64,000 bases of DNA from Macrostomum lignano (GCA_002269645.1 NIVC01001525.1:186001-250000); one strand, 5' to 3'. Positions 29,525 to 54,347 are shown, counted from the first letter of the stretch. Translations and numbers: made by a program. The notes: a model not told the origin generated them from the letters alone.

Positions 29525-29540
29525 AATATTAAAATAAAAA

Positions 29541-29997
29541 ATGACAAAGATTAAACCAGAACCATCAATAAACTCAATAAAATCATTGAATCAAAGAGAC
29601 CAGGTCTTATATCAATAAAGGTGCCAAAGTAAAAGTCGATCCCGTGCAGCAAATAGTTCAATGTAATGAACAAAGACACAGCATCACAGATGAAAAGTCA
29701 GGAGGAATCCTACCATTAGCAGCTCTTATTCCGATCATTGCAGGCGCTGTAAGTGCCGCAGGTGGTGTAGCTGGAGGTGTAGCAACTGCTGTTAAAGCTG
29801 GGAATGATAGAGCCCACCAGCTAGAATTACAAAAGATTGCAAGAGACAAAGGTATAACAATTAAGGCAGGAGAGGGCTGCCCTGAGGGCTGCCCCGATCG
29901 TGATGATTGTGAGCATGAAAATTCTGTAAGCAAGTCTGACATTGTCAAAGCCATCATGACACTGCACAATGCTGGGTTTACAATAATGCGGATGTGA
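29541..29997 (+). CDS. Small virion protein with an adenovirus pX(mu)-like hydrophobic motif; N-terminus apparently frameshifted
   Basis: GGILPLAALIPIIAGAVSAAGGVAGGVA resembles adenovirus pX GGILPLLIPLIAAAIGAVPGIA. An ATG at 29541 needs frame changes to reach the 29644 ORF. Confidence 0.6.
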
Positions 29998-30121
29998 TGA
30001 GGTTTAAAACCCCGCTTTATCCAGCTTCATAAACCTAACGCTACTGATAGGATGTAGAAACAGTTCAACTTTTCTATCAGGGTGGTCACCCTCAAAAATT
30101 TTTTTTATTTTATAGAAAAAA

Positions 30122-33942: not shown

Positions 33943-34029
33943 GAGGTGGAGATTAAGCTTAGGAGATTGGGTTTAAGAGGTGGAGATTAGGTTTAGGTTT
34001 AAGAGAAAGTTTAGTAAACCTCATAAAAA

Positions 34030-34431
34030 ATGACAACAAATAACTTTCTTGAAGATTTGGCTAATGAACTGGAAATCCCAAACTTTAGAGGAATATTTAT
34101 GAGGGACACTCTGCCTGATTATCCTCTAAGAAAAGAATGTGGCATCATGAACTTTGACACCACCGATAAGCCAGGATCTCATTGGGTTTGCTGGGTGATT
34201 GATCCCGATCGCAAGCACAAGTGTTATTACTTCGATAGCTATGGGACGGCAGTACCAGAAGAGCTAAGAAATTATATGAAGGGGAAAAATAATAAAAAAA
34301 TTTACCACTCAGACTTTATTCTCCAAGGTCTTAGCAGTGATATTTGCGGTGAGCTGTGCATGACTGTTTTGTACGCAATGACCAAAACACGAAAGACCTA
34401 CAAGGAAATTATTCATACCTGTGTTTCATAG
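34030..34431 (+). CDS. Adenain-like cysteine protease
   Basis: GSHW (His), YFDSYG (Asp) and Q..SSDICGELC (Gln/Cys). Confidence 0.88.
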   Translation: MTTNNFLEDLANELEIPNFRGIFMRDTLPDYPLRKECGIMNFDTTDKPGSHWVCWVIDPDRKHKCYYFDSYGTAVPEELRNYMKGKNNKKIYHSDFILQGLSSDICGELCMTVLYAMTKTRKTYKEIIHTCVS

Positions 34432-34435
34432 GGGT

Positions 34436-35147
34436 TCATTGTGCATTCCTCGTTGTACTTCTCGTTGTCCTTCTTTCCGCATAATGTTGAAGAACTTTCT
34501 CGAGTTCATTTCTCAGCTGACTCATGTCATCAGTACCGACCATGTTCAAGTTCATTCGAATTGATTGTTCATAAAGATCCTGAATGGTTTTGAACTCATC
34601 CTCTGAAATGAACTTATCCTCGATTGCCCTTGAAATGTACCCTATGATTGAAGTGTGCACCCCTTTCTCTTTTACTTGCTTCTCCTGTAGCTGCTTTAGT
34701 TTTTTTCGCCTGTTTCGCGCTACTGCTCCAGTAATTGCTGAAATAAGTCCACATGCAGCACCCACAGAGCCGAGCGGGATTGCGATTGGGGCTGTGATGG
34801 CTGGCAACACTGAGACAGCTGCAGCAGATCCAGATAGAACAGACACAGATCCTAGAATCATATTGCTGTAGTCGAAAAATTTACAGTGGCTGTCATAGCG
34901 CTTAATTTTCTGTGTTGTGGAAAATATTTTTTTCAAGATCATCGCGCATTTTTTGAATCTCCACCAGTCGAAACTGTTGAGAGTTACAAGAAATGACAGG
35001 GTAGAGTTTTTGTTGCTCATATTGGGGTGCATTCAGATTCGGTGCCAGGTTTTGTGTGTTCGAATTCGGTGCCATTGAGTTTGGTGCTGTCGGTATTTTA
35101 GGTTCAACGTATTGAGACTGATCGTATAGAGAATTTTGTTGGGCCAT
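34436..35147 (-). pseudogene. Putative membrane protein with one frameshift near 34925
   Basis: MAQQ...LYPVI..QQFRLVEIQKMRDDLEK continues in another frame as KKIFSTTQKIKRY and then a long Gly/Ala-rich hydrophobic segment. Confidence 0.55.
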
Positions 35148-35238
35148 TTTTTTCTCTAGAAAAAATAAAAAAATTATAAAACTATCCGGTTGAAAGATCT
35201 GTTTTCTTTTTGATAATTCCATCTGCACCGCCGGTTGT

Positions 35239-36048
35239 CTAGGCGGCTCTCTTGACGCTGGAGGATCGCGAGTCCAGCAGGCAGCGGCTGGGCGGCTGAC
35301 GTTTGAGAGCGTGCCGGATTACTCCGTCGGGGTCCAGAGCTCCTTCTACTCGATCTGTAGACATGACCGGACGAGCAGCAGATTCTGCTTCATCAATAGC
35401 AATATCACGAAGATTGAGTGTTCTCTCCAGACGATCAAGCCTCCTTATTATTTTACCCCAAGAGCTATACATTCCGTTTAGATAGCTACTGTGTGATACA
35501 TCCTTTCTCTTTAATGCTTCAAGTCTTTCTTTGATTCGATCATGCAACGCTGTTGACTGAGTCATGAACTCTTCTAAATTCCTCACTTTACCTGTGTTGG
35601 TTGCGACGTTTTCTTTAATTCTATCATGCAACGCTGTTGACCGAGTCATGAACTCTTCTAAATTATTTACTTTAGCTGTGTTTGTGAAAACTCCTCCTTC
35701 AAGAATACGCATCCGTCTATCAATGGAATTTCCCAGAAGATTAACTGTCGATCTCAAACCGTTGATTTGCGAGACTATCGAAGTTATTTCTGACCTAAGT
35801 TCATTAGTTGCGTTTAACAACGGCACATAAAGCTTATCACTTTCAAACTTCTGCCTAGCTACTTTAAGCCTGAGATCTTCCATGTTTATTTGCAACTGGT
35901 GCATGGAGCGCTCTAGGGCTTTCAGTCTGTTTTTATTCAGTTTGATCTCTGGGATCTCTTCATCAATGTTAATGTAGCGCTTGTCAAGGAAGGAAGTTGT
36001 GAGAGTGCTGTTGCCTGTAGTTGATTCACCTGCAAAATTAATAGACAT
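35239..36048 (-). CDS. Coiled-coil protein with an internal ~26-aa repeat
   Basis: Intact 269-aa ORF; NTAKVNNLEEFMTRSTALHDRIKE and NTGKVRNLEEFMTQSTALHDRIKE. Confidence 0.65.
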   Translation of the reverse strand: MSINFAGESTTGNSTLTTSFLDKRYINIDEEIPEIKLNKNRLKALERSMHQLQINMEDLRLKVARQKFESDKLYVPLLNATNELRSEITSIVSQINGLRSTVNLLGNSIDRRMRILEGGVFTNTAKVNNLEEFMTRSTALHDRIKENVATNTGKVRNLEEFMTQSTALHDRIKERLEALKRKDVSHSSYLNGMYSSWGKIIRRLDRLERTLNLRDIAIDEAESAARPVMSTDRVEGALDPDGVIRHALKRQPPSRCLLDSRSSSVKRAA

Positions 36049-36063
36049 TTTTTAAATGAAAAA

Positions 36064-36864
36064 TTAAAGTAAAATTCTTTTCTCCTTATTAATCATGACA
36101 AACTGATAGGGTTGGTTCCACTTTTCATAGCATATGTTAACAAATTCCTCCTGTGATATTGTTCTGTTAGAGTTCTTAGCTGGATATGTAATGTGAGCTG
36201 GGGCAATGACCTCATTATAAAATCGTTTCAGTCGATCTTGTGGTATGGTTGGGAAAAGGAGAATCAAATTACAGTTACCTCTAATTGTTTTATTCGGCAG
36301 TTCAAACCAGTTTTGGGCAATGTAAATAACATTGCAATTATTATGTCTACCCCGGGTGAAATAATTTTCTATCTGTTTCTGGGGACCGGTCATGCAGTCA
36401 TCAAAGACAATCAGGTGCTTTCTCCCCTTTTCTAGTTCATCAGGTTGAGGTAAGAGTTTAGTTTTAGGATCTATCTGTGGATCTCCATAAGTGAAAACTT
36501 TAATGTTTTGCCATTTTTCATTGTCTGGGATGTGCTTTGCGTATTCAGTGGCTACAACTTCCGGGTTGCTGTTGAGGTCTTTTTGATGTCTAAAACATTG
36601 AATAATATCTTCCTTGTTGAGTTTGTTCTGTAGGCCCGCTACTAGCATTTTATACTCATCTTGATACAGAGTGGGTGAATAGATATGTAGTGTGTCATAA
36701 TCGAGGAATCCAGGTCTGAGGAGCATGTTAAAAACTCTGAAGGTTTTCCCTGACCCAGATGAGCCAACAACAATGCATCGGAAGTGCCCTGGAATTATCT
36801 CGTTGTGAGCAAATTTTATCTGATTGCGTGTCCAGTGGGGACGAAAGTCGTTTGTGAAGTCCAT
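36064..36864 (-). CDS. A32/FtsK-like packaging ATPase
   Basis: Walker A GSSGSGKT, Walker B LIVFDD, and GRHNNCNVIYIAQ. Confidence 0.92.
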   Translation of the reverse strand: MDFTNDFRPHWTRNQIKFAHNEIIPGHFRCIVVGSSGSGKTFRVFNMLLRPGFLDYDTLHIYSPTLYQDEYKMLVAGLQNKLNKEDIIQCFRHQKDLNSNPEVVATEYAKHIPDNEKWQNIKVFTYGDPQIDPKTKLLPQPDELEKGRKHLIVFDDCMTGPQKQIENYFTRGRHNNCNVIYIAQNWFELPNKTIRGNCNLILLFPTIPQDRLKRFYNEVIAPAHITYPAKNSNRTISQEEFVNICYEKWNQPYQFVMINKEKRILL

Positions 36865-36916
36865 TTTTTTATGTAAAAAAACTTTTTCTTTTTAAACTTG
36901 TGTATTTAAGACGCGT

Positions 36917-38002
36917 GTGTCTTTTTTCGGGTTGTGTGTGTCTTTTTTTCGGGATGCGGCTCGTGCTAACGTTGACAAGCATGATGCGGATGTGGCTCTG
37001 ATCAGTAACTTTTGGGCGTACATGTTCAAGGAGTTTAGTGTATCGAATGGGAGCACTGAGTTGGAGCGAATCGCCAACTTTGGAATTGTCTATGACGCTC
37101 ATTGTTTGATCGAGAATCCTGATTTTATTCAGTTGGGAAGTGGTGCGGGTTTTATTGCAGATGAAAAAGAAGGAGACATCAATGACAGTGGCTATAAAAA
37201 TAGGAAGAAGAGATACAACTATGCATTGCAAGGTGCTGATGATGCTGCTAAGAACCCGCAGTATCGGTCTGTTGATGTATTTGTACCACTGAGATTCATG
37301 AGTGGATTCTGTAATACATTTAATCGACTGACTAGTAACTTTAGCTACACATTTAGACTGACTAGAGATGATCGCAGTAGAGTGTTGTGGACTGGGGCGG
37401 ACCACACTGGGATGGCTGTGAAGCTAACCGGAATCGAGCTGTATTTGGAAGTCATTGAGCCAAAGACCGCACTAAAAGCAGACTATCTTAAGGCAATAGA
37501 GAAGGACATTGATGTTGCATACACGGCCTACATGTGTCGAGATGAGCGAAACGAAACTAGAACAAACATCTGCATCAAAGAGGGATCATGCAGCAATCCA
37601 AGGTATATCATTATTAACATGAGAAACCCAAATAGCATTATACGCTACATGCATGGAGACGTGCGGTCCATTCAGCATGAAATCAGTGATAATCTTTACC
37701 CTGCACTGCCACAAAATGGAGATTTCAGTCAGAACAAGATTAGCAAATTTTACAACGAGTTGGTCGACTTGGCTGTGAAAGAGAACAATGGAATTGCTAT
37801 CACTGCTCTTCAATATGGAACTCTATATCCAATGTTTGGAGCTGATGTGTCTGCCAGACAAATGCCTACTGATAACAGCCCTGTGAATATCGTGACTAAC
37901 ATTGAGAGGACTACCGCAACACCCGTGGACTTGTACATTATCTATGCATTTGAGAGGAAGGTGAAGCTTAACATGATCAACAATTCATCCAGTAAAGTTT
38001 AA
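36917..38002 (+). pseudogene. Major capsid protein (double jelly-roll type), N-terminus apparently deleted
   Basis: ALISNFWAYMFKEFSVSNGSTELERIANFG and PRYIII..YP motifs resemble Polinton MCPs. There is no ATG upstream of these motifs, and the junction has a duplicated GTGTGTCTTTTTTCGGG. Confidence 0.65.
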
Positions 38003-38025
38003 ATATTTTTTTGTGGGTGAAAAAA

Positions 38026-38877
38026 ATGGAAGCCATAGCCGAAAGACTAAACAACATTGTTTCACACTCCAAGGAGAGCATTCCTATTACAATAACTGGG
38101 CGAATTAATGACTCAAACGGGATGTTTGTTGAAATCCAGGATTTGGATCCAGGCGCTAATTACCATGTCTATCTTAACGACTTCACTGGTTGGTCAAACG
38201 TTCCCAATGTGATGGCAGCAAATAATAAGTTTTATTACAAATGGAAAGGTGCAGCAGCAGACCCTGTGGTATTCCATGTGAGCACGCAAAGTGTGGATAC
38301 CTACAATAACTTTCTAGAAAATGTCTTTACTAAGAGAGGCCATTTTGAGACACCTGATGCGAGTAAGCCAGAGAAGAAACTGTTCCCTGTCAAACTAACC
38401 TATGATCTCACTGTAATGAGAGTGGTCATGCAAGTTCACAAAGATGCGGAGGTTGAGTTTAAAGATGACACTTGGTATAGGGAACTGGGATTCGAGAAGA
38501 AAGTTTATAAGGCAGAATCCGCGGCGCGGACCGCCACTCAAGCATCGGGGACCGTTAAAATGGTCCGGGAAAGTGTAAGCGGTTTGTTCTTAGCACCCAA
38601 TATTGCAGACATTGTAAAGGGTTTGAATATTCTAATCAGAAGCAATCTCAGTCTTGATTGGGTATTTAAGGGAAAGCGAACGAATATTTTGTACAACATC
38701 TCCAACTCTGTTGCTGGAGGACAGATGGTGGTAGAGAAACCAAATCCAGTGAAAAGAGTTGTATTGAGTAATAAGGAGATTCACGAGATTGTGCTACAGT
38801 TTGAGACTGAAGATGGGGTGGGTGTTGATTTCAACGGTGAAGAGTTTGTGTTGACGTTGATCATTGAGAGAATGTGA
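38026..38877 (+). CDS. Minor capsid (penton-like) protein
   Basis: Located after the MCP; C-terminal ILIRSNL...ILYNI...GQMVVEKPNPVKRV...IVLQFETEDG.VDFNGEEFVLTLII pattern. Confidence 0.75.
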   Translation: MEAIAERLNNIVSHSKESIPITITGRINDSNGMFVEIQDLDPGANYHVYLNDFTGWSNVPNVMAANNKFYYKWKGAAADPVVFHVSTQSVDTYNNFLENVFTKRGHFETPDASKPEKKLFPVKLTYDLTVMRVVMQVHKDAEVEFKDDTWYRELGFEKKVYKAESAARTATQASGTVKMVRESVSGLFLAPNIADIVKGLNILIRSNLSLDWVFKGKRTNILYNISNSVAGGQMVVEKPNPVKRVVLSNKEIHEIVLQFETEDGVGVDFNGEEFVLTLIIERM

Positions 38878-39498
38878 GAAAATGTGTTCCCTTTTAAGTA
38901 CGCTTGCCGAGAATAGAGTGGTATGAAAAAATGCGCGCATGTGTACTCAAAATCTCTTACCCCATTCTGACAGTTTGTGGGCGTGGGCGTCGCGTGTGTG
39001 GGGGAGAGGGGAGTGTATGTGTGTGGGCGCAGCGCGCGTTGGGGAGAGAGATTTTCACTTTAACTGAGCCCAGCCGAGGAAGAATTTCCTTGATTGATAT
39101 TGGCCTTCGCTTCTCTTCTCTCCACACAAGTGTACAGTCTTGAGCACACTGGTTTCGGCTACAATTTCTCTTTCCACCATGCCCTTCTCCTTCATACTCC
39201 TCACCTCGCGCTATGCTCTGTGTACAGAGAAGTCTCACGCCTCATGCTCTATCGTACACTGAGCTATATCGATTGTTTTTCCCTGCTTGACTCCAAGATT
39301 GTACAGTCTAGAATTTTCTGGAATTTTCTAGCTGTATAGCTGTATTTAAGCAAATGCAGAAACACTCGGGTTGATTCTCCCCGCATATGCCATCAACTGC
39401 GACTGAGAAACGACGACTGCAGGAACTTAAGCACGCTGAAAGTGATCTAAGAAATAGTCCGCCAAACTAGAAGATTAGAAGACAAGAAGATTTAGAAA

Positions 39499-40176
39499 AT
39501 GGAAGTCGAGTGGAAGCTTCATTTGACAGATAAGCAAGGCCTTTGTGCCATGCTACAAAGAGTTTTACAGGATATTCCGTCACATCTACAAGCAAGAAGA
39601 AGAGAGGAACTAACCACCTTTTTCGGTCTAGAAACTGGCGACCTACCAATCGAGTTTTTCGCCATGGCCCCTGATGATATCGCCGCAGCGAATGAAGCGC
39701 AAAATGTGAGTAGCGAAGAGAAGAAGGCGGCGGCTCTGCAGAAGAAGATGGCGGATCTGCAGATATTCAGGGAGAAGTTGTACGCATCCCGCGTAACACT
39801 AGCTGATCAGCTGATGGACGCTGTTGATCACCAGCTTCCATCTGGCGAGCAGAACATCATCACTAGGGTGAAGGCGGCTCTAGCAAAATACAAGAAGACT
39901 CAAATTGGAGGTCTACATTGGATTCTCGAAGTTGGGCGGCTGCTAAAAACTTATCGCAACGAGAACTTTGGACAAGATGTTAAAGTGCGGTTCGCCCATT
40001 TGTGTAAAAATGTAAACATCCAGGAATCAACTGGCTATTTGTACATTCGTCTGTACAAACTGTCTGTTACCCACCCAGGCTTGAGACAGGTGTCAATGCC
40101 AATTAGGGAACTAAACTCTAAGATGAAGTTTCTAGAAGAAATTTTGGCCAGTGATCCTGCGTGGAAAGTTGTGTAA
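39499..40176 (+). CDS. Uncharacterised 225-aa Polinton accessory protein
   Basis: Intact ATG ORF; the helical C-terminal half is weakly DUF3102-like by eye. Confidence 0.55.
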   Translation: MEVEWKLHLTDKQGLCAMLQRVLQDIPSHLQARRREELTTFFGLETGDLPIEFFAMAPDDIAAANEAQNVSSEEKKAAALQKKMADLQIFREKLYASRVTLADQLMDAVDHQLPSGEQNIITRVKAALAKYKKTQIGGLHWILEVGRLLKTYRNENFGQDVKVRFAHLCKNVNIQESTGYLYIRLYKLSVTHPGLRQVSMPIRELNSKMKFLEEILASDPAWKVV

Positions 40177-40199: not shown

Positions 40200-40790
40200 A
40201 TTTTTCTAACGCGTTAGAATTTCAAAGAGAAGATTCAACAACTGGAGACAGCCGATTGGTTAAGTAGAGGAGGGTAGCAATTTTCTCAGTACTGTGTGCA
40301 ACTCAGTCGGTGGGTTTTAAATTCTAAAGCTGTTAGAAATTTCTATGTGAAAAGTTTCCCGCAAGATAAGCTTGGGCACACCAAATTTTCACATAGAAAA
40401 TTCTAACGCGTTAGAGAATCTAGCTGCTGGCTCAAAGGAACGCTAGGCTGGCTCTGTATGGTTAAATAGAGGGGGGGTAGAAATTTTCTAACGCCGTTAG
40501 AATTTTCTATGTGAAAAGCTTCCCGCATGATAAGCTTGGCACACCAAATTTTCACATAGAAAATTCTAACGCGTTAGAGAATCTAGCTGCTGGCTCAAAG
40601 GAACGCTAGGCTGGCTCTGTATGGTTAAATAGAGGGGGGTAGAAATTTTCTAACGCCGTTAGAATTTTCTATGTGAAAAGCTTCCCGCATGATAAGCTTG
40701 GCACACCAAATTTTCACATAGAAAATTCTAACGGCGTTAGAGAATCTAGCTGCTGGCTCAAAGGAACGCTAGGCTGGCTCTGTATGTTGT
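40200..40790. repeat. About 162-bp tandem palindromic repeats (3 full units plus a degenerate one)
   Basis: GAAAATTCTAAC recurs at 40396, 40559 and 40721; 23-bp inverted arms CGTTAGAATTTTCTATGTGAAAA / TTTTCACATAGAAAATTCTAACG. Confidence 0.9.
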
Positions 40791-41320: not shown

Positions 41321-42375
41321 ATGAGCCTACTGCAATCTTTAGATATTCGGCAAAGCGTGCTCGCCCTGTGCGATATTCTCGGATCTTCTCAGTCAAAGCG
41401 TAACAAAATAGCCAGACCTGTCGAGGCGTGCCCAATTCTGAGACTCACACCGCCAACGACTTCCGACAGCCAAGACGCCAACTGTGAGATCTTGATTGCC
41501 AGTCTGGAAGCTGAGGATTCTGAAGACACGACCGGATCGAATCAAACTCCATATGCCGTGGTGTCTTCATTGCACTCGGTAAAAGTCACCTTCACGGGCT
41601 TACCGAATTTAAGCGAGCGATTCAGTGCAACTTTTCCCCCAGTGCTCAGTGATCTGTGCAGACTTGTATCGCAACTGATTAAAGTGACTGGAGTCCAGCA
41701 GCTCAGGATTCAAGTCGATCCAAGCACTGCTGACCGAATACTCAAATCATCAGTCCAACCGCAGCTGCTTGATGACGTTTCAATCAGGCATTTCCTGTCA
41801 TCCGCTTTTGTGTTCTGCCATCTACTGAGGGTCCTGGGAGAAACCCGTCTCGAGTCACTTTTGAACCTGAATGCTGGCGATGCGCTGGTGACGATCGGAG
41901 ATCAGCCCCAATGCTCGATGAGAGTCGCTGTGAGTTCCTGCTTAAACGGAGAAGATGGAGCAGTCAATGAAGAGTTGGAGCATTGCATCGCTGAGAGCTC
42001 AAAGCGTTCTACGCCAGTTTATCTGTGCATTCTGTTCAACGAGATCAGGACCTGCAAATGGTACCTGAGGACCAGAAAAGAAGTTGAATGTCAACGTAAG
42101 CGGTTGCCCAACCATGACGTGACTCGAATTCGAGTGGAATCGGATTCTGGCCTGAAAATCCGAGTTATTCTATTCGATGTTCAACAAGGAGAATGCTATC
42201 AGGACACAGGAGCTCTGCCAGCGGAACAGGTACTAAGCGAGTTCAGCGATGACCAGTTTCTGTGTGCTGCGGTTTCCAAGTGTGAGCAGCTGGCTCAGGA
42301 GCACTCGTTTCAGCTGGAGTGCTTCACGGTGCCCTGCCGAAACACCGCTCACATGCTGCAGGCAGCAGCAAAAGT
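41321..42375 (+). CDS. Large first coding exon of unknown domain, probably the N-terminus of the ankyrin-cGLR gene
   Basis: 352-aa ORF with donor GTAAGA at 42376 (phase 2), compatible with the 42460-42508 exon. Confidence 0.6.
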
Positions 42376-42459
42376 GTAAGACAGTTTTAAAAGTGCGCAA
42401 TGTCAGTTTATGTTAGTGGTGACAAAATGAACTTATATGGAATTTGCGTCACATTTCAG

Positions 42460-42508
42460 AGCTCAGGAAGCCCAAAAGCAGAGTGCTGAGGCAGCATCGC
42501 CAGCACAT
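42460..42508 (+). CDS. 49-nt linker exon
   Basis: tttcag acceptor and GTAAGT donor; phase 2 to phase 0, open (AQEAQKQSAEAASPAH). Confidence 0.55.
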
Positions 42509-42636
42509 GTAAGTGGTCACAGAACAGCACAATGCTGTTGCATGTAATTGTCATGAGGGGCTTTCAGGACGCAATTTTCAACTTTCCAGAAGTGGGAGGT
42601 CGATTTGAGAAAGTCCTCCAGCTAGGTACCCTTAAA

Positions 42637-43439
42637 TGTTACGGTACGGTGTAATCTACCAATAATCTACTTGTACAAGAAATACACAATAAAATATCTT
42701 TCTGAACGCTTGCAAGAAAACAGTAGCAGAATCAATTTTTTACGAGTAACTCAAGCAAATTTATTTAAATTCCTAATTTACTGTCATAATCATTACAATT
42801 ACTGTATGCTTTGAAACTACATCTACTCGAACGTACGGTAGGTACCCTTCTGACGTCTCCCTCTAATCGAGCTGAGTCGGCGTCAGGACACACGGACTCT
42901 CTTTCCCCTCTATGCAACCGAAAGAAAGAAGGCAGAGTGCGCACTTACTCAGCTGGCGGCTGTCGCTTAGGGATGGTGCAGTAGGTGGCCTTTTTGGTAT
43001 ATTTCCTTTTCAGGTAGTACGACCGTAACTTCGGCTGTACTAGGTATAGCGCTGACGGAATGCAGGGTTCTAAGAGAGGGGGTAGCCGGGCCACGCACCG
43101 CTCCAACCCGCCGCGAGCGATGCTAAATAGCACACGCCCACGGAGGGGGGAGGGCCACGCGCTCTCCACCCCACTACCCACTACCCCACCAACCCCGCAG
43201 TCACCCCCCCCCGGGGACGGCAGCACCAAGCCCGCCGCCGGCTCAGCCAATCACTACACGACTGGGCTGGCCGCGACCAATCGCACGCGAGGCGAGCGAA
43301 CAAATACCAAAAGACCAAACCGACTTCAGCCTCTAACTGCGGCATACGCAAGGGGGGGGATAACAAAAAATAGTTGAGGGGTGACTCAGCCCGCTGGGAG
43401 GCTAGGTGCACTGGCACTGTGAAAGTGCACAGCGCAACA
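42637..43439 (-). mobile_element. Solo-LTR-like sequence in an intron
   Basis: Ends TGTTACG...CGCAACA (6/7 inverted match); CCAAT and TGACTCA motifs inside; no TSD found. Confidence 0.45.
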
Positions 43440-44048
43440 TCTACGAGTAGTAAGCTTCGAGCGCCTGATAAATGTATTCGGTGCGATAATTTCCCGAACT
43501 CTTGCATGACTGGGTGCATGCCTTCTTACAAAGATACCTAAATTTTAAATAAGGCTCATGCTGTTTACAATAGAAGCCTGGATAGACGACAGGAAATATT
43601 TTTGTTCCTATTTTTTGTAATGTTGTTCTCAAAGTGATTCATTGATACGCGCGTAGATTAAGTAAGTAAGCATACAAAATTACGAGCTATGAAGTTAGAA
43701 GATATTCAAAGTAAGTCGGCCCATCATTCTTTATTTTAATAGGAACATTACAGATTCTGTCCTGTCCTGAAACTCCCTCATGAAAACTAATATTAATAAA
43801 AATTTTGCCATACAGCCAGTTAAGATAATAACATTAATTTGATAAAAATATGGTACACAATAATCTTTGCAGACTCCCGGAGCTCCACATTAATATTAAG
43901 GTTAATTTCCACACGAGGCCAGAACTCTTGCATATAGCTCGAATTTTAAATGAGGCTCGTGCTGAAAACTGCTAGCCATAATAATTTTACCATAGCCAGT
44001 TAAAGTACAAAAATTTGATATAAATATGCTTCACAATAAACTTTACAG

Positions 44049-44656
44049 ACTCCCGGAGCTCTGCATCATCTCGCAGCCACCGGAGATGCATCACTGCTCG
44101 CTCAAATCCTTGAAGCCGATCCGTCAGTACTGCAAGACCCACACAAATCGTTTCCTCATCGCACGGCCCTTCTCTGTGCCGCAGCAGCCTCAGTCGCGGA
44201 CTTCTCTCAAGGCTCCGAGGCTCATGCCGAGTGTTTCGAAATCCTCATCAGCAGAGGAGCTGATCCGCAAGCTGCGGACAGCCGGAAGCACTCTGTCTGG
44301 CACTGCGCCATACTCTCACACAACATTCCTCTGCTAAACACTTTGCTGGCGAACCACAGGGCAGACATCAACAGCGCAGATGGAAGCTGCAAGACGCCGT
44401 TGCTGCTGGCAGTAGAAGAGGAGAATGCTCCGGTAGCAGAGATGTTGTTGGACAACGGGGCCAACTCTCAGCTCACTGACAAGGCCGGTCAGTCTGCCCT
44501 GACCATGGCTGTTTCTGCTGGAAACCTGGAGCTGGTGAAGACTGTTCTGAAGCATGAGCCGGAGATTCTGCGTGACAGCGGTGCTGAGAAATACGCCAGC
44601 ATCTACTGGTCTGCGTGGAAGCAGGGCTACGAAGACATCTGCTTGCATCTTCTGCA
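44049..44656 (+). CDS. Ankyrin-repeat exon
   Basis: Open from the ctttacag acceptor to the GTGAGT donor: ALHHLAATGD..., RTALLCAA, KTPLLLAVEEEN, QSALTMAVSAGN. Confidence 0.85.
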
Positions 44657-44714
44657 GTGAGTAGAAATACCTGAAATAATCAGGCATAATAGTAAGACAA
44701 AACTCAATATTATT

Positions 44715-44752
44715 TGCGACGCGTTTCGGCTAAAACTAGCCATCTTCAGGCA
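44715..44752 (-). ncRNA. Hammerhead ribozyme motif (inverted copy)
   Basis: Reverse complement of 45318-45355. Confidence 0.7.
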
Positions 44753-45117
44753 CTATCGAACAGAATTTATTTCAACTTATTAAATACTGTGTAGACGACA
44801 AAATCAGGTATTGAAAAGATATAAAAGGACTAAAGGATCAATGTACAGTATAGCAATTTTCATAATATTTGTTTGTGGAAACACGAAACTCTCCGATTCA
44901 GGAACATTTGCTGCAATGCCATGGTTGTTGTGATGAGCCAGACATAACCTCTCATTTCAAGGTCATAGACAACAGCAAAAATGAGCATAAACTTAACATT
45001 CTTGAAGCTCTGCACATTAAGTTACACAAACCCATTCTCAATGTCCAACTATCTGGAGGAGGTGCGAGTGAACGGCTGTTGGTGTTCTAAGCTAGAGTAC
45101 ATTTGGGGCGCATACGC

Positions 45118-45176
<59 letters not shown>

Positions 45177-45317
45177 CTCTGTCCTGTCATTCCACAAACA
45201 AATATTATGAACATTGCTATACTGTACATTGATCCTTTAGTCCTTTTATATCTTTTCAATACCTGATTTTGTCGTCTACACAGTATTTAATAAGTTGAAA
45301 TAAATTCTGTTCGATAG

Positions 45318-45355
45318 TGCCTGAAGATGGCTAGTTTTAGCCGAAACGCGTCGCA
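45318..45355 (+). ncRNA. Minimal hammerhead ribozyme motif
   Basis: tgc-CTGAAGA-t-GGCTA(gttt)TAGCC-GAAAC-gc-GTC-gca: conserved core, stem II, and a minimal palindromic stem III (ACGCGT), as known from Penelope pLTRs. Confidence 0.75.
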
Positions 45356-45459
45356 AATAATATTGAGTTTTGTCTTACTATTATCTGTTAAGAGTGCTTC
45401 TCTACCGCAATCAGGCATAAGGTCTGCGAGCCAAAATACATGTAAACCTACGAGTACAA

Positions 45460-45772
45460 GGGGCACAGCAGCTCAGCAATAACCGCGTCTGACTCTCATG
45501 CCACGGCCCTGGTTTGATTCGCGAGGCCACATTCATGTGGGCCTCGTGCACGAATAGTTGGTCTGGGAGTTGCCGTGCGATTCACAGCCATAAGGGCCGA
45601 CCCCCAGGGCACAGAGAGTTTACATGTCTTACGATTGGGAAGTCAAGGCCGCTGTACACCTGTGTGAGCGTGTGTATGAGTGCGTGCCTGCGTACAGTAT
45701 TGGCATGCTCTCAGGAGTCAGCGGAATGGGCAGAATTGCCGTCAGCGCTGGTTGCTGAGATGGTGCCTGGCA
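45460..45772 (+). mobile_element. Diverged tRNA-derived SINE-like element
   Basis: tRNA-like head (AGCAGCTCAGC...GGTTTGATTC); central block GGCCGCTGTACACCTGTGTGAG...GAGTCAGCGGAATGGGCAG shared with the SINE at 45970. Confidence 0.55.
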
Positions 45773-45969
45773 TTGTACTCGTAATTATACTTTTTCCCAG
45801 ACGCAATAACAAAATATTTTGGCCATTATTCCACAGTTTTATGTGTACCATGGACATTTGGAGTGAAAAAATCCATCGCACAATATTTTTGTTAATGAAT
45901 ACAGAACAGCAAGGAGTAAATGAACAAGAAGGAAAAAAATCATTAAAACTAAAGTACCAGCTACACGAA

Positions 45970-46312
45970 GGGGGGCCGCAGCCCAGCGGTCCAGCCAGCG
46001 ACCCAGGCTCGATTCCAAGTGCAGTCACATTAATTTAGGGCTGAATTGGAATCTCGGCTTGGCTCTGCTCGTGCAATTAACGGCCTTGAGAGCCAACCCC
46101 CAAGGCGCAGTGAAGTGTACATGCCTAACGATAAAATAAAGTTAGGGCCCCTGTACACTCCTGTGTGAGGGTGTGCCTGCTTACGTATCCGCGCGCTTGT
46201 GTGCCTACTCAGGGGAGTCGGCGGAATGGGCAGTAATGCCTCTCGCCGGTTGTGTGCCTATGTCGCTTAAAGTGCGCCAGGGTGCACACAACCCCCCTGC
46301 CTCTAATAAAAA
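45970..46312 (+). mobile_element. tRNA-derived SINE, full copy
   Basis: 14-bp TSD ACCAGCTACACGAA (45956-45969, 46313-46326); B-box-like GGCTCGATTCC; A-rich tail. Confidence 0.85.
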
Positions 46313-47538
46313 ACCAGCTACACGAAAAGAGTTCATAATAAATGTCACAGCTAGTGCAGTTTATCAGCTTGTAGTCGAAATTTGACAATGTAAAAATCAA
46401 TTTGTCACCCAAGGCCAAAGTGAAACATGCAGTTCTCAAAGCCGCAGTTCCCAAAGATGCTCGACACTTTAGTTTGATGATTTGGCACTGCAAAAGGAGT
46501 TGGTCTATTTTGAATGTTTAATATAAACGAGAAATACAGGTGCTCAAGTATAGTTGCCGAAATTACCATTTAAAAGATGCACGTCTTGGCTTGCGACTGA
46601 CGAACTTCGTCTGATGAGCTTCTTTCGCCACGGTATCCAAGCTGGGATTCTTTGGGACTGTCGCTGCTCGACTGAATTAATTGGCCGCTTTGAGGCATCG
46701 CTTATAGCCGTCGAGGCGTTGAAGACTGCATGGTCGCGTTTTCTTCTTAGGTAGCGCCGCACGGTTCGCTCAGTGGTCGACAGGAAGTTTTTTCCAATTA
46801 ATAAGCGCTGCTGTTTGACGAGATGCACCAGCCATAGTTGCTTGACAAGACAAATAGCTTTTTCTCGCACTACCCGCTTTCCTGATTTCTTGCAAGAGGC
46901 AAGCTAAATCAGCACTCATCACAATGTTTGATTGTATAGAATGCAACTGAGTTGAATAATGGCCAATCAATTAAATTGCATACTATACAAGTGCATTGTA
47001 TTTATACTTTCACTCAGCGCGCAGTCATTATTCCACACTTGTGAGGCCATCATTCCACACTTTTTGTCGCAGTCATTATTCATTATTCCACACTTTTTTA
47101 TCATGCTTCAATTGGCTGTTTTAAGAGTTATTTCACCCATAGACAACTGAGTTTTGTGTCTTAGTTTGCCCATAGACAACATTGCGCTAGGGTACGAAAG
47201 CCCTATTCAAAATACTTTTAAAAATGCTTAACAACATCTATTTAGCGTCAATACAATAAAATGACGACTGGGTGAAATAACTGGTAACTAGATCAGGTAT
47301 TTTGGCCACTTTAATTAGATACCCATTTAAAATATTTAATAGTTTGATACAATCAAATATACTTCGTATTCTTGCCATTTAGCACCCTTCAAAACAGAAT
47401 TATGGTTTAAACAAAACATTTCAGAGAGAAATTTGAATTGAACGAGCACTCCATTACGGTAAGAAAACATTTCTGTTGCCGAGAAAGCGAATAAAAACCA
47501 CAGATGGTCATCTAAAAATTTGCCATAAAATTTTTTAG

Positions 47539-47939
47539 GAAGCCAAGAAGCTGAACTGCCTCATCAGCCAAGCTAGGCAGAAGGAATTTACAAAAGCCGT
47601 CAGCAAAGAGAACTGCAACTGGAGAGACTGGGAGGGAAGAACTCCTCTCCAGGTGGCTTCCAGTGGAGGCTTGCGACCGTCTAGAAAATGTCACCTCAAG
47701 TGCGCAGAGCTGCTGCTCCAGCTGGGTGCGGATCTCAACGCTGCGGATCTGGAGGGAAATACGCCTCTGCACTTGGCTGCTGCTGCTGGCAACACGGAAG
47801 TCGTTGAGCTTTTCCTCAGATACGGTGCATCCCGCGATAAGAGGAACTTTTCGGATGCCACTCCGCTGAATGCGGCAGAGAGCAAAGGACACTCGGAAGT
47901 GGTCGCAGTGCTGGCAAGGGCGGAGACACCAAGCGTGAG
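47539..47939 (+). CDS. Ankyrin-repeat exon (acceptor uncertain: 47539 phase 0 or 47568 phase 2)
   Basis: [30 protein letters not shown] and [13 protein letters not shown]; donor GTGAGA at 47940 (phase 2). Confidence 0.85.
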
Positions 47940-48469
47940 GTGAGATGAAATTTTTGTTAATATAGTTTAGAATATGTTCTGATGGACAACTATCGGCTGT
48001 TAGGTTTTAAGATAAAAATCAGGTTGTTAAACACTTGAAAATCAATTCTAAGCTAGCTGTCTCTGATCAATAAGGAACTGCAGGGCCTGTTCTGTCCAAC
48101 TTCTCTCCAAATTACAGTATTTTCCAAGCTTTAGAATTGTATACACTATCCATCACTGCACATCGCACTTATTTGTGAAAGTTGCGGATCGAACCCAAGT
48201 TTCTGGAAGTTGAGCGTAGGGTTTTGCTCCAAACTCCCTAAATCTTAAAAGAGGGAAAATGCTGGCTAGCAATGAAGACTGCAACAATTTTTTCCGGCAT
48301 TCGCACTTGACTGACTGCTTCGCTTCATTTCCATGTGCTTCCTCCAGTTTTCCACTTTCTGTCAAAATGCCTGCATTTCACAAGCGAACTTTGGAAATGG
48401 CTAATGATGTGTACCAACTTGCATGTACCAACTTCACTTCCTCACCTCGCTTTCATTCACGCATTCCAG

Positions 48470-48511
48470 AAAACAACAGCACACCCACACAACCGCTCAA
48501 AACCGCTCAAT
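48470..48511 (+). CDS. 42-nt phase-2 mini-exon, paralog of 50013-50054
   Basis: cattccag acceptor and GTGAGT donor; open frame linking 47939 to 48748. Confidence 0.55.
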
Positions 48512-48747
48512 GTGAGTCTCATTCTCCTTGGCCCACTCTGCAAATATGCACTGTGATCTGTCACTCTGGACCGGGACCGCCCTTTTTCTCCCTCCTTCTT
48601 TCTCCCTTTTTCTTTCTCCCTCCCTCCACTCATTCTCCCTTCCGTCTCGCTGTCCTCTTTTTCCCTCCGCTCTTTCTCCTTTTCGCCTTAGTGCCTTTCT
48701 CCTTTTTTTCTCACTTTTAATTTTTTTTCATCCATACCGCTCTTCAG

Positions 48748-51700
48748 AAAAATGGGCGAAAATCAAAACCGACATCAGCAAGAGACCATTGAAAACATTA
48801 CTGCTGCTGCACGCAATGGCCGCTTTCAAGACGTCAAGAATTTCCTCTCACAAATCAATGACCAATCAAACAGGGACACCTGCTGCATCAAAGCTGCCGA
48901 AGGAGCTGCATTCAATGGTCACTTTGAAGTCGTCAAGTTTCTCCTCCCACAAATCAATGACCAATCAAACAGGGACACCTGCTGCATCAAAGCTGCCGAA
49001 AATGCTGCAAACAATGGTCACTTTGAAATCGTCAAGTTTCTCCTCTCACAAATCAATGACCAATCAAACAGGGACACCTGCTGCATCAAAGCTGCCGAAG
49101 ATGCTGCAATTCGTGGTCACTTTGAAATCGTCAAGTTTCTCGTCCCACAAATCAATGACCAATCAAACAGGGACACCTGCTGCATCAAAGCTGCTGAAGG
49201 AGCTGCATTCAATGGTCACTTTGAAATCGTCAAGTTTCTCGTCCCACAAATCAATGACCAATCAAACAGGGACACCTGCTGCATCAAAGCTGCTGAAGGA
49301 GCTGCATTCAATGGTCACTTTGAAATCGTCGAGTTTCTCGTCGCGTGTCTCTCAAGTGACGATCTAAAAGCGAAGCTCCGTTTCCAATGCGCACTTACCG
49401 CTTGCTCTCGTCTTCACGAAAATGTCGTTGCCTCCCTCGGCCTCGAGCCCCAATGGCTCTTCCAATCGAACACCATCCTCAGCTTCACTGCAGCGATGGC
49501 CATCGAAAGCAGGAACTCTGTTCTCAACGACACCCTCTCTCGAATGCAGCCAGCTCAAATCACACAGCTGCTCCGTCTCTCCATCTCTCAAAGAAACGTC
49601 ACTCTTGCCGCCACACTGCTCAATCATGAGCGATTCAGCACACAGCACGTCGATCTCCCAGACGACAACACCGGAGCCACCGCTCTCATGCTCGCAGCTG
49701 ATGCTGGTCAGCACGAACTCATTCACAAACTCATCGATCTCGGCGCCTCACTGCACGCTCAAGACACTCACGGTCGCACTGCACTGTCACGAGCCTGCCA
49801 AGCCGGTCACGTGCGAGCAGCCAAGACTCTCATCGACAATGGAGCCGATGCCAGCCATCGAGACAGTCAAGGCCTCACGTGTGCGCAGCTCGCACAGCGA
49901 TTTGAGCAGCGGCAGGTGCTGCGGCTGCTAAATCCCACCGAGTCAGTTGCCATTTGTCCCATTACTTGCAATTACTTCGCTACCTTACCTCGCTTTCCTT
50001 CACACATTCCAGAAAAACACAGCACTGCCAGCCAGCCGCTCACCGCCTCCATCCGTGAGTCTGACTGTCTTTCTCCCTTGGGCCACTGGAATTTTTAAAT
50101 CCGCCTCCACTGACTCCACTCTCACCTCTCCACCCAGACTCTCACACCACTCAGAGCAGCACCTCAGCGAGGAGCTGCATCGACTGCTCAGCGATGCGGG
50201 ATTCACCGAGCAGAGAGCAAAGTATCTGAAAAACCTGGCTGACTGGCTACAAGAAGTCGCTGGAGTCCTCACACAGGATCGCAGGCAAATGACCGGCAGC
50301 TACGCAGAGGGCTGGGCCAACAGTCTGGTGCAAGTCAACGGCAGGACAGCTGCAGACTCCGACATTGACTGGACTGTGCTGGTTGATGGGCAAAAGTTCC
50401 ATCTGGAAGGTGGCTGTGACAGAACAGGTTTCTGCAGCAACGACACTCCGCTCCAGGTCAAGGAGGGCCACGCACAGGTGGCAGTCGGAGCAGGTCAGTG
50501 ACGCTCCGCTCATCATCAGAATGCCGCAATCCCCAATCCAAGCCCCCGTAAACTTTGCTCAATTTTTTAGTAATTAACTGAACTTCAGAGCTCACAAGTT
50601 CAACCTGAGTTTGAGACCTGACTGAAATACCTTTCAGCACTCATTTTGCTTTGAATAAAAATTCTGGCAACCAATCAGTCAACTCAAGTCCCTGCAATTC
50701 AACTGCCTCACCACCTCAGAGGTTATGAAACAATTATTAAGCAATGCCTTGCCTTCTCTTTCCCCTTAAAATATTTTTTCTCTTTCTCCGCCCATCATCA
50801 ACTCCATAGCGGTGCGCCTGCATGCATTTCAACGAATACTTTGCTTCATTCACTGATTGCAGTAGTAGCACTCACACACGAACTCAACCAACTCATTCAA
50901 GCAGCTGAAAACCAACCCATCCTGTTCATTCGCCACAATGCCACTCTCTGCTCACTGCGCTTCACAGGCAGCCAACCTGCTGTGACAGCCACGGCGTGCG
51001 GTGTGCGGCCTGCACAGGACACGTGCCATGCGATCCCGTGCTGCAGCAGTTTCGGCGAGGACAGAATAAAAAAACTGCTTCAAAACAATTTAGATAAAGT
51101 CCACCTCGTTCGGGCGACCAGACCGAGCTCGACCAACGAGCTCAGAGTGAGCTTCAGCTTCCAAGAGAAAGACATCATGAGACAGTTGAGCACAGTCCAG
51201 GGCCAGCTGTTCACACTCATCAAGTTCATCTTCAAGAGACACTTGCCGCTCACTCTGGACACACCTGGACTCAAGACCTACCATGCAAAGACTCTGCTAT
51301 TCTTCATGCTGGAGAGGCATGGCACAGATCCTGAAACTGAGGCTTGGCAGCAGCAAAATCTGATCGCTCTGCTCAACGAGTCTCTCGACATGATGCTGAG
51401 CTTCATCGACTTGAGTAGCTCGCCCGATGAGTGCATGTCGCACTTCTTTATGCCCGATGCTCCGCTCTACTTCAAGAACGCTGGAATCGGCGGCGACTTC
51501 GACAACACGAAGGCGAGGGTTCGAGACCGACTTTGTGAGCTGAGAAGCGACATCGGCGGAGTGGTCGAGCAGCTGAGGAGACTCGTGAGACCTCTGCAGT
51601 CAGAGAAGTTCTACTTTCACCTGTTCACTCTGCTGCCTCTGACAGCGCCGCCTGCTGTCACGGAGATCAGGGAAGGAACTTGGAATCCAGAAATGTACTA

Positions 51701-52580
51701 CAAGTTCGCAGACGTGTACAGTGTGGTGCACCAGTGTTTGAGCGAGCTGCAGTCGGAATCGAGCGACAGAGACACCCTGATGAGGCAGCTCAGTCTCCTG
51801 CATGAGCTGCAGTGGTGCAAGTGCGCCGCCCTGTGCATGACCGCCATGGCACATTTGAAGTTCGGAGAATCTGAGGAGGCTGAGAGACTCGCGATGGAGC
51901 TGTACAGACATCAGGTTGAGTCAGGGTTAAAGCCACAGGATATTCGATATGAATATATCCAAACTAAATCGCCAGCAGACTCAGACTGGGCGTGGAGGTT
52001 CTGCCTCCCCTGCGACTCTCCGCCTCGCTTCCCATTCCTTCCCGAGTTCACGCAGACTCTGTTCACAGCCAGACTGTCGCAGCCTCTCTCCTCCCACCTG
52101 TACGTGAACTTCCGCTGCCTGAGCTGGAGTCTCCAAGCTGAGCTGCTCCGCAATCGCACACCTGCAATCGCATTCGATCATTGGATTGAACAGCTGCTTG
52201 GAGACCCGGACTTGGAGGAGCTGCTCACTCTGGCTCACTACAGCGACTGCCGCGAGCACGTGGAGCTCAGCCTGCAGCAGATGGAGATGATCGAGAAAGA
52301 GAGACGCGTCGCCATGGAAACGCAGGACGAGGAGAAGATCGGCTGGGTCAGGCAGAAGCGGTGGCGAGTTTCGAACCGCAGCGGCAGCGACAGCGGCGCT
52401 CACCGCAGCAGGGAAGATGAGGAGCGGAGGCTGTGGGCGAGGGCGAGGCTGCGGCGAGACGGGGCCGACTCGGGTCGCCTGGTTGCCATGGAAACTGCAG
52501 CGGAGCAGAGAGACAGCTGGACTCACGCCAAGCTCACGTCGCAAAGTCGAGATCGGAAAAGGAAGGCTGAGTCAGACTGA
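48748..52580 (+). CDS. Ankyrin-repeat plus Mab-21/cGAS-like nucleotidyltransferase (cGLR); exons 48748-49941, 50013-50054, 50138-50493, 50968-52580
   Basis: All GT-AG junctions keep frame (1066 aa from the ATG at 48752); 33-aa ANK repeats; NTase TGSYAEG...DSDID; QDTCHAI; HLVR...ELRVSFSFQEK; LKTYHAKTLLFF. Confidence 0.88.
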
Positions 52581-53291
52581 CTGCCTAGAGCGGTGTTCGA
52601 TGCTGAGAATTTTCATGTACTTAGTGTTTTTTCAAGCAAACTGTCGGACTCTGACTGACTATGCTCATTTATTGACTGTGGGCTCTTTATTTGTCTGGTG
52701 AGGGTTTGCGTACTCTGGGTACATCGTTGCTCATTCTCTATTCCCTCGTGCATGACCTATCTCTGTCACCCACCCCAATGCTATGCTATTGACTTTCACA
52801 AACTGTTTATTCTGATGCATGCTGACTTGATGAGGGATCTGCGTGTTTTGCTTGAAAACACCTGGAATCGCCTCTACATTTTGACTGCGCATGGGTGGCC
52901 AGAAACTTGGCAAATTTCTGCCTGCTCTCTAGGAACTGCAGTTTTGTACATTTTTGCTGCAATTCAATTCGCACTGGATGCTGAATTGCTTTTTCCGTTC
53001 AAACTGCGTCTCTGCTTTAATGCGGGCTTTTCTCTGCGATTTTGCGGACTTCAATACTCAATTGCCAAATGCTGTTTAATGACATATTCAAGCCAAATGC
53101 ACAGGTAGCAGTTATCTGCATGAAACAGTAATCTATGTTCGAGGAATTTTACTGCATATACATGTAATACTGAAAAAATACTTTGGATGTACTTTTATAG
53201 CTTAAATGTTGTGTATACATGCTCCCGAATAATCCAAGCACCTGCTCTCAGAATGAGCTCGACTAGTCTGCAAATTGATTTCATGTAGTTA

Positions 53292-54347
53292 TGAACATTC
53301 AGTGACTGACAGCCTGACAGCTGCCTCATGAACATTCAGTGACTGACAGCCTGACAGCCTGACAGCTGCCTCATGAACATTCAGTGACTGACAGCCTGAC
53401 AGCCTGACAGCTGCCTCATGAACATTCAGTGACTGACAGCCTGACAGCCTGACAGCTGCCTCATGAACATTCAGTGACTGACAGCCTGACAGCCTGACAG
53501 CTGCCTCATGAACATTCAGTGACTGACAGCCTGACAGCCTGACAGCTGCCTCATGAACATTCAGTGACTGACAGCCTGACAGCCTGACAGCTGCCTCATG
53601 AACATTCAGTGACTGACAGCCTGACAGCTGCCTCAAGAACATTCATTGACTGACAGCCTGACAGCTGCCTCATGAGCATTCAGTGACTGACAGCCTGACA
53701 GCTCCCTCATGAACATTCAGTGACTGACAGCCTGACAGCTGCCTCATGAACATTCAGTAACTGGAAGCCTGACAGCTGCCTCATGAACATTCAGTGACTG
53801 ACAGCCTGACAGCTACCTCATGAACATTCAGTGACTGACAGCCTGACAGCCTGACAGCTGCCTCATGAACATTCAGTGACTGCCAGCCTGACAGCTGCCT
53901 CATGAACATTCAGTGACTGCCAGCCTGACAGCTCCCTCATGAACATTCAGTGACTGACAGCCTGACAGCTCTCTCATGAACATTCAGTAACTGACAGCCT
54001 GACAGCTGCCTCATGAACATTCAGTGACTGACAGCCTGACAGCTGCCTCATGAGCATTCAGTGACTGACAGCCTGACAGCTCTCTCATGAACATTCAGTA
54101 ACTGACAGCCTGACAGCTGCCTCATGAACATTCAGTGACTGACAGCCTGACAGCTGCCTCATGAACATTCAGTGACTGACAGCCTGACAGCTCCCTCATG
54201 AACATTCAGTGACTGACAGCCTGACAGCTCCCTCATGAACATTCAGTGACTGACAGCCTGACAGCTCTCTCATGAACATTCAGTGACTGACAGCCTGACA
54301 GCTGCCTCATGAGCATTCAGTGACTGACAGCCTGACAACTCCCTCAT
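53292..54347. repeat. 37/45-bp minisatellite (CTCATGAACATTCAGTGACTGACAGCCTGACAGCTGC)n
   Basis: Tandem units with an optional extra CTGACAGC octamer. Confidence 0.95.

Follow-up and report, generated by a model that had tools for sequence, protein, structure and literature searches.

The subject of this analysis is a window of 64,000 nucleotides (nt) from the flatworm Macrostomum lignano (GCA_002269645.1, NIVC01001525.1:186001-250000), in which positions 41321-52580 on the plus strand probably hold one nine-exon gene encoding a chimeric cGAS-like receptor (cGLR) of 1,783 amino acids (aa) that arose by gene fusion. cGLRs are recently recognised animal pattern-recognition enzymes, and ligand and product are known for few of them; M. 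lignano is a regeneration model that is genetically tractable and in which transgenesis is available. The new elements here are a corrected exon model, the chimeric origin of the gene together with its breakpoint, and the extra N-terminal module carried by this member of the family.

The gene is present in the deposited genome. Window positions 31321-62580 equal NIVC01001525.1:217,321-248,580 at 100% identity, and 41321-52580 (plus strand) corresponds to Mlig015600.g2 (BOX15_Mlig015600g2), with the 1,783-aa product PAA66849.1. The deposited gene range (10001-21260 in the locus L002) is 11,260 nt long, the same as 41321-52580, and its start and stop are the limits of the coding sequence (CDS). 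A corrected chain of nine exons, 5,352 nt in total, translates to PAA66849.1 exactly over all 1,783 aa; the fused open reading frame (ORF) has no frameshift and no internal stop, and every splice site is canonical. The exons, together with the intron at which the two halves meet, are the following (ANK, ankyrin; NTase, nucleotidyltransferase; AF2, AlphaFold2).

41321-42375, plus strand: exon 1, start codon and orphan N-terminal domain, aa 1-352 (100% match to PAA66849.1)
42460-42508, plus strand: exon 2, 49-nt linker (GT-AG flanks; within the exact translation)
44049-44656, plus strand: exon 3, ankyrin block 1 (Pfam Ank families; 96.5% identity to the M. lignano protein P0043)
47425-47458, plus strand: 34-nt micro-exon, EKFELNEHSIT (flanks TTTCAG and GTAAGA; present in PAA66849.1; the P0043 tail reads TKFGLTEHSIS)
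47539-47939, plus strand: exon 5, ankyrin block 2 (acceptor 47539; donor 47939 is the last gene-A-derived element)
47940-48747, plus strand: fusion intron (polypyrimidine tract and CTTCAG acceptor at its 3' end, 4 nt before the ATG)
48748-49941, plus strand: exon 6, first coding exon of the ANK-cGLR half (ancestral ATG at 48752, MGENQNRH; five 33-aa ankyrin-like repeats, a helical region and three canonical ANK repeats)
50013-50054, plus strand: exon 7, 14-aa linker mini-exon, KTQHCQPAAHRLHP (exact translation; equivalent linkers in the paralogs P0001 and P0003)
50138-50493, plus strand: exon 8, NTase N-lobe (G1181-S1182 at 50295-50300, D1203 at 50361-50363, D1205 at 50367-50369)
50968-52580, plus strand: exon 9, third catalytic Asp D1264 (51018-51020), Mab-21 C-lobe, C-terminal extension of about 240 aa and basic tail (PF20266, match to 5eog, hhalign, AF2/Foldseek)

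The sequence DWAWRFCLPC... of the family-specific C-terminal extension is at 51984-52007, and the stop codon TGA is at 52578-52580. A preliminary description of the window, made from the sequence alone, had proposed that one protein of about 1,780 aa combines an unrecognised N-domain with three ankyrin blocks and a cGAS-like NTase, and this is what the RNA-seq-guided PAA66849.1 turns out to be. Its nine intervals, with their AG and GT flanks, do form one ORF of 5,331 nt (1,776 codons plus stop), and its start at 41321 and stop at 52580 are both CDS limits of the deposited gene. Seven of its nine exons are identical to the deposited model, and two details had to be corrected. It had flagged the join from 44656 to 47568 as the weak link, and this join is indeed rejected: the path that translates exactly to PAA66849.1 runs from 44656 to the micro-exon 47425-47458 and on to 47539, an acceptor 29 nt further upstream, and adds 21 aa. 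This path was suggested by the tails of P0043 and P0045 and then confirmed by the exact translation. The second detail is the exon 48470-48511, which is absent from PAA66849.1; there, 47539-47939 joins 48748 directly (SVR/KMGENQ). The chain as a whole is well beyond chance, with close homologues for every block and ankyrin matches down to E=7e-63. PAA66849.1 (P0269) is a non-representative member of the 90%-identity cluster of P0043, which is itself a 591-aa fragment; it was absent from three homology searches and was found via the cluster listing.

A mature transcript across the junction from 47939 to 48748 is supported only indirectly, via the deposited RNA-seq-guided model. The Mlig_3_7 annotation combines RNA-seq (STAR, StringTie, TACO) with mapped de novo transcripts, and since multi-gene precursors make up about 7% of the assembled M. 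lignano transcripts, a step called TBONE cuts transcriptional units at spliced-leader (SL) or poly(A) read peaks (PMC5730564). The Mlig015600.g2 unit was left uncut by this pipeline, L002 has no second gene call, and the join uses canonical GT-AG sites exactly, as expected of a genuine splice junction. The same region could also be an operon-like pair, with a gene A at 41321-47943 (716 aa) followed by an ANK-cGLR gene at 48752-52580 (1,066 aa) that is SL trans-spliced at 48748, the fused ORF being a minor read-through. This is unlikely in our view, even though several observations fit it. Complete paralogs start at the equivalent ATG (MGQNQSRH) without a gene-A part, and the acceptor 4 nt before the ATG (CTTCAG/AAAAATG) is conserved in the stand-alone locus L001 and agrees with the motif of trans-splice acceptors, [T/C]TNCAG. 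The frame at the 47939 donor, if left unspliced, meets an in-frame TGA at 47941-47943, and the distance from this stop to the acceptor of the second gene is about 800 nt, below the 1 kb used as an operon threshold (PMC8629364). The share of multi-gene precursors among the transcripts points in the same direction. On the other hand, the pipeline that cuts at SL and poly(A) peaks left the unit whole, and the deposited model joins canonical sites exactly. Gene-A paralogs splice onward from the same donor, and a 716-aa end is not the normal terminus of that family. A cis donor upstream moreover favours cis- over trans-splicing (Conrad et al. 1993, as cited in PMC8629364). A scan for AATAAA and ATTAAA found neither in the fusion intron, which is uninformative because both are also absent within 720 nt after the stop. 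Two separate genes had been considered as the principal interpretation as well; the identical 1,783-aa GenBank protein displaced it, and it is kept as the rival just described.

The case for an origin by fusion comes from comparing the two halves with their separate relatives. The 5' part (exons 1-5) belongs to a small M. lignano family of genes, here called gene A, that have 3' exons of their own, and the 3' part (exons 6-9) is a complete member of a different and much larger family, of the P0001 type, which has its own ATG. In the gene-A family (P0271, P0273) identity to the window gene is 90-92% over the N-domain, both ANK blocks and the micro-exon. As an example, PAA68172.1 (BOX15_Mlig001598g12; P0271, 831 aa) shares all of these elements and splices from the same donor at the end of its second ANK exon; the exons that follow, 5.7 kb farther on, are its own, and it ends in a Ser/acidic tail without a Mab-21 domain. 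P0273 continues into further ANK repeats, again without a Mab-21 domain, and P0045 reads beyond the equivalent of the 47939 donor into a tail that is absent from the window. At the DNA level, the window is homologous to the gene-A locus L003 between 41326 and 47993, and this homology stops 54 nt beyond the donor. Similarity to L001, the locus of P0001, starts only at 48707, 45 nt before the ATG, and spans the polypyrimidine tract and the CAG acceptor. The breakpoint thus falls in the interval 47994-48706. The 10 kb upstream of P0001 in L001 hold no gene-A-like exons but the pol gene of a long-terminal-repeat retrotransposon.

The protein of that locus, PAA68676.1 (BOX15_Mlig016402g1; P0001, 998 aa), is 86% identical to the window gene over the NTase and the C-terminal extension, and it has the same exon layout, the 33-aa array, the three ANK repeats, the linker mini-exon and the GS/SDID/PAQD motifs. 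It differs in that it starts with MGQNQSRH, lacks the N-domain and the extra ANK blocks, and has three rather than five 33-aa repeats. The last intron, which separates its two NTase exons, measures about 17 kb (L001 11582-28683) compared with 474 nt in the window; intron size therefore varies widely among recent paralogs. Both P0001 and a second stand-alone paralog, P0003, begin MGQNQSRH at the position of the window ATG at 48752 (MGENQNRH). It is worth noting that several stand-alone N-termini in the family (P0001, P0003, P0040, P0087) start MGxxxS, as in MGQNQSRH, MGQYLSCH and MGNQNSQV, which resembles an N-myristoylation signal. The corresponding Met of the chimera lies within the protein (Met718), and the sequence that follows it reads MGENQNRH (Q3E, S6N; 48752-48775), a change that would be consistent with a loss of constraint on the motif.

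In this half, a tandem array at 48806-49339, with a period of 99 nt and 5.4 copies at 92% (Tandem Repeats Finder), encodes five 33-aa repeats. Pfam profiles match the protein as Ank_2 (E=7.2e-63, eight stretches) and Ank (E=1.8e-48), so that multiple 33-residue ANK repeats are recognised by profile and the protein belongs among the ankyrin-repeat proteins.

The N-domain of 352 aa has a much narrower distribution. Its homologues are only the M. lignano proteins P0043, P0044, P0270 and P0271, in two clusters, and apart from the product of the window itself it was not found in any cGLR-family sequence retrieved by homology search. There is no sequence match to it in the PDB and no Pfam match even at E<=10. 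A Ras-associating label that UniRef attaches to the paralog P0044 could not be reproduced, as no such match to the N-domain was obtained in Pfam at E<=10. The AF2 model of the domain is unusable (pLDDT 35) because of too little sequence depth, with three near-identical sequences as input. The fusion was seen at this locus and its identical copy only (UniRef n=2). From these comparisons, the N-terminal half is a locus-specific add-on by gene fusion and not a feature of the family.

The simplest series of events leading to this arrangement would be as follows. The 5' half of an orphan N-domain plus ankyrin gene would have been severed within the intron that follows its second ANK exon, about 54 nt in, and the truncated gene-A copy would have landed upstream of a complete ANK-cGLR gene, at a distance of about 0.8 kb. 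Its donor at 47939, now orphaned, would then cis-splice to the pre-existing acceptor 4 nt upstream of the cGLR ATG. The junction happens to be in phase, and the old start codon has therefore become the internal Met718. The 710-nt interval between the homology blocks holds a linker-type mini-exon of 42 nt, 48470-48511, with intact splice sites, the one that had been placed in the chain by the preliminary description. Its surroundings (48431-48537) are 76% identical to the real linker exon 50013-50054 with its flanks (49974-50087), and its peptide, KQQHTHTTAQNRSI, is identical to the linker of P0003 at 13 of 14 positions. It is either a relic or an alternative, optional cassette. A splice from 48511 to 50138, skipping exons 6 and 7, would be in frame and uses the same phases; it is unsupported and was set aside.

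Selection on the two halves was estimated as the ratio of nonsynonymous to synonymous substitution (dN/dS) from tblastn-anchored codon alignments, the A half against L003 and the B half against L001. In the former comparison dN/dS is 0.51 for the A half as a whole, 0.55 for the N-domain and 0.48 for the A-half ANK blocks; in the latter it is 0.61 for the B half, 0.49 for the NTase, 0.66 for the C-terminal extension and 0.79 for the third ANK block with the helical region. This pattern indicates fast evolution under mild constraint, and it is compatible with a functional, diversifying receptor family, though no proof that the copy in the window is functional. The values around 0.5-0.6, the relic linker exon in the fusion intron and the restriction of the fusion to one locus and its identical copy could also be read as signs of a recent, effectively neutral rearrangement. 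In that case the chimeric mRNA exists and the N-terminal half contributes nothing, or the copy is heading to pseudogenisation. The M. lignano assembly is redundant and rearranged, with 180 Mb in duplicated blocks (PMC5730564), which fits as well. We regard such neutrality as quite unlikely, given that 1,783 codons are open, the splice sites are canonical, the catalytic residues are intact and dN/dS is below 1 in every segment.

The C-terminal part of the fusion protein has the fold of a cGAS-like (Mab-21) nucleotidyltransferase, as the preliminary description had proposed, and here AF2, Foldseek and PF20266 agree. An alignment of aa 1128-1711 with 30 family members (27-87% identity) gave an AF2 model with pLDDT 89.5 and pTM 0.91, in which the GS follows the strand 48-52, DID opens the strand 75-81 and the third Asp lies in the strand 134-143. 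A Foldseek search of the PDB gives cGAS chains in its first 30 places, followed by MAB21L1 (rank 31) and, at rank 50, MB21D2; the probability is 1.00, the best E value is 8.3e-8 and the target TM score is 0.53-0.57 over about 340-400 columns. Pfam recognises Mab-21_C (PF20266) with 26.4 bits against a cutoff of 24.1. The extension of about 240 aa at the C-terminus has no Pfam match; it contains invariant D, W, F and N positions and packs onto the NTase in the AF2 model.

Also the active-site residues claimed at the outset (GS, DxD and a third Asp in QDTCHAI) are found to be conserved family-wide, down to 27% identity: GS is kept in 28/28 sequences, the first and the second Asp of SDID in 27/28 each, and the third Asp (PAxD) in 26/29. 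In the window protein, G1181-S1182, D1203, D1205 and D1264 supply the catalytic pattern hGS ... [D/E]h[D/E] ... [D/E], and where they lie in the model is in keeping with the beta1-loop, beta2 and a later strand. The closest structural matches are vertebrate cGAS structures (4k9b, 6lrk, 4jlz; E about 1e-7), which share with the window NTase the motifs GSY.E...D.D...PAVT...D and YH.KT / FF.P. The window NTase is only 14-17% identical to them, has an insertion between GS and DxD as well as large N- and C-terminal additions, and is acidic, with an isoelectric point (pI) of 6.1 (5.6 with the C-extension) compared with 9.07 for the human cGAS catalytic domain. There is no evidence in it for a DNA-binding surface. 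MAB21L1 (5eog/5eom) and MB21D2 (7lt1) are structural matches too, and MAB21L1 also matches in sequence.

The family around this protein is large and flatworm-specific. An exhaustive search of 1.84 billion representatives (50%-identity clusters) gave 147 matches, of which 61 reach E<=1e-30. Every homologue of the C-terminal part comes from M. lignano, the best with 86-89% identity, and for the 15 representatives below E=1e-13 whose taxonomy was looked up the species was M. lignano in 15/15. The nearest outsiders, such as a protein from the annelid Lamellibrachia, match weakly and in the Mab-21_C region only. ANK-fused cGLRs are a minor known architecture, found for instance in Stylophora pistillata (Fig. 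1C/S2A in Li et al. 2023, bioRxiv 10.1101/2023.02.22.529553, PMC9980059), and their ankyrin repeats have been proposed as ligand- or protein-interaction modules (Li et al. 2023). In the accessible portion of the domain table of that study, M. lignano accessions with Ank_2 are listed; PAA66849 is not among the matches listed in the accessible portion of its tables. The authors describe flatworms as mostly without cGLRs, and M. lignano is absent from the accessible part of the STING/cGLR count table. A literature search on Macrostomum cGLR, Mab-21 or cGAS, or on Mlig015600, gave nothing beyond the Li et al. 2023 supplements.

The window protein is therefore a chimeric member of the already catalogued M. 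lignano ANK-cGLRs. Like that class, it has a cGLR NTase core fused to ankyrin repeats; unlike it, it carries a second, unrelated N-terminal module (the 352-aa orphan domain and two ANK blocks) and the C-extension of about 240 aa. The suggestion that this would be an unusual receptor architecture holds in part, as ANK-cGLR fusions including the M. lignano family were known (Li et al. 2023) and it is the N-terminal addition that is specific to this locus. Other members show further arrangements. P0026 (BOX15_Mlig012150g1, 1,099 aa) has an N-terminal cGLR-like NTase, then ankyrin repeats, then a caspase p20 domain (PF00656), which would join a sensor enzyme to a protease effector. P0088 (1,346 aa) and P0008 have two tandem cGLR-like domains each, which recalls multi-domain fusions of the OAS2/OAS3 type.

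Several points weigh against a fused and enzymatically active receptor. The junction from 47939 to 48748 is given solely by the deposited model, and the phase match there has a chance expectation of 1 in 3. Separate expression of the cGLR half is plausible because it has its own ATG, because the SL-motif acceptor is conserved in a stand-alone paralog, and because 30% of M. lignano genes are trans-spliced (PMC8629364). The dN/dS values of about 0.5-0.6 would indicate only mild constraint, and they are pairwise and not assignable to this lineage. As for the enzyme, the Pfam model of the Mab-21 core (PF03281) does not match the window protein, and hhalign aligns the family profile with human cGAS in the C-lobe only (probability 75.6%, E=2.4e-5); the catalytic correspondence is therefore based on motifs, topology and Foldseek instead of an alignment at the residue level. 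Five NTase-domain constructs from M. lignano (#89-93, of which #93 is PAA68676.1, that is P0001) were part of the cGLR screen of Li et al. 2023, and the 15 enzymes that Table S3 marks as active include none of the five. The enzymatic activity of the family is putative.

These last observations bear on whether the domain is an enzyme at all. It could be a non-catalytic scaffold, as proposed for MAB21L1/2, acting through its ankyrin interactions only. The sole PDB sequence match of the C-terminal 655 aa is MAB21L1 (5eog, E=0.012), and both the unmatched NTase-core model and the outcome for the constructs in Table S3 are in line with this. It is nevertheless improbable, as 26-28 of about 29 members retain GS, both Asp of DxD and the third Asp. 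Mab21L1/2/3 are without a predicted functional active site (Li et al. 2023), unlike the M. lignano family, in which the full catalytic triad is kept. In addition, the screen used truncated domains and nucleic-acid ligands only, and a construct that is not among the 15 selected is not for that reason inactive; the paper does not state how the five behaved in the primary screen.

If the fusion protein is indeed an enzyme, its function may be pictured as follows. Judged by its sequence and predicted fold, it would be an active nucleotidyltransferase that makes a nucleotide second messenger on activation. The ankyrin arrays (five copy-number-variable 33-aa repeats, three canonical ANK repeats and the two gene-A ANK blocks) would be the ligand- or partner-binding, regulatory part. 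High pI is associated with nucleic-acid-sensing cGLRs (Li et al. 2023). Because the NTase is acidic and NTase-only constructs are not among the selected actives, it seems that the trigger is something other than nucleic acid or that the full-length protein is required, and as activator a protein or a different cue of non-nucleic-acid nature would be more likely than dsDNA or dsRNA on a basic groove.

Window positions 5556-13806 and 13808-22060 form a direct tandem duplication of 8.25 kb with 99.65% identity, and each unit contains a satellite-like array of some 2.9 kb whose self-similarity is about 80% (5475-8436; 13839-16688). Further upstream, a retroelement reverse-transcriptase ORF lies at 1966-3537 on the minus strand (RVT_1, E=4.6e-13). 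Just upstream of the gene, at about 28487-40176 on the plus strand, there is a run of long same-strand ORFs, some of them unassigned and none called in the deposited annotation. They include an rve integrase ORF (28487-29524, E=2e-9) and a double-jelly-roll-like domain (36917-38002) that scores 23.5 bits, below the cutoff of 27; the run may be a Maverick/Polinton-type element. A tandem repeat at 40322-40786, about 0.5 kb upstream of the start codon, has a 163-nt unit in 2.9 copies (97%), and a 37/45-nt satellite at 53291-54000 starts about 0.7 kb after the stop. Within the gene, the 2.8-kb intron contains an inverted repeat of 195 nt (44686-44880 and 45190-45384, 99.5% identity) around a (TC)25 tract, which looks like a foldback element or a miniature inverted-repeat transposable element.

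The practical value of the analysis is modest and consists of a corrected exon model and of defined constructs and mutants. For the biology of M. lignano, it points to ankyrin-fused cGLRs that have undergone a very large expansion of their own in this species and kept their active sites intact, although flatworms have been described as mostly without cGLRs, and the window locus illustrates how an N-terminal module can be gained by gene fusion onto a pre-existing acceptor. A wider and rather doubtful idea is that the Macrostomum ANK-cGLRs form a diversified repertoire of innate sensors, comparable to the NOD-like receptors, which would detect non-nucleic-acid cues with their ankyrin arrays, new architectures arising through capture of the ATG-proximal acceptor. 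It draws on the 61 representatives at E<=1e-30, the M. lignano origin of the 15 looked up, the variable copy number of the 33-aa array and dN/dS values of about 0.5-0.6. The window locus would then be a fusion caught in the act, and P0026 and P0088 would be other outcomes. If true, such a repertoire would sit in a phylum reported to have lost Toll-like receptors and, mostly, cGLRs. Should the full-length proteins be active where the NTase-only constructs apparently are not, the ankyrin arrays would be implicated in sensing or regulation, and this would point to cGLR activation by cues other than nucleic acids.

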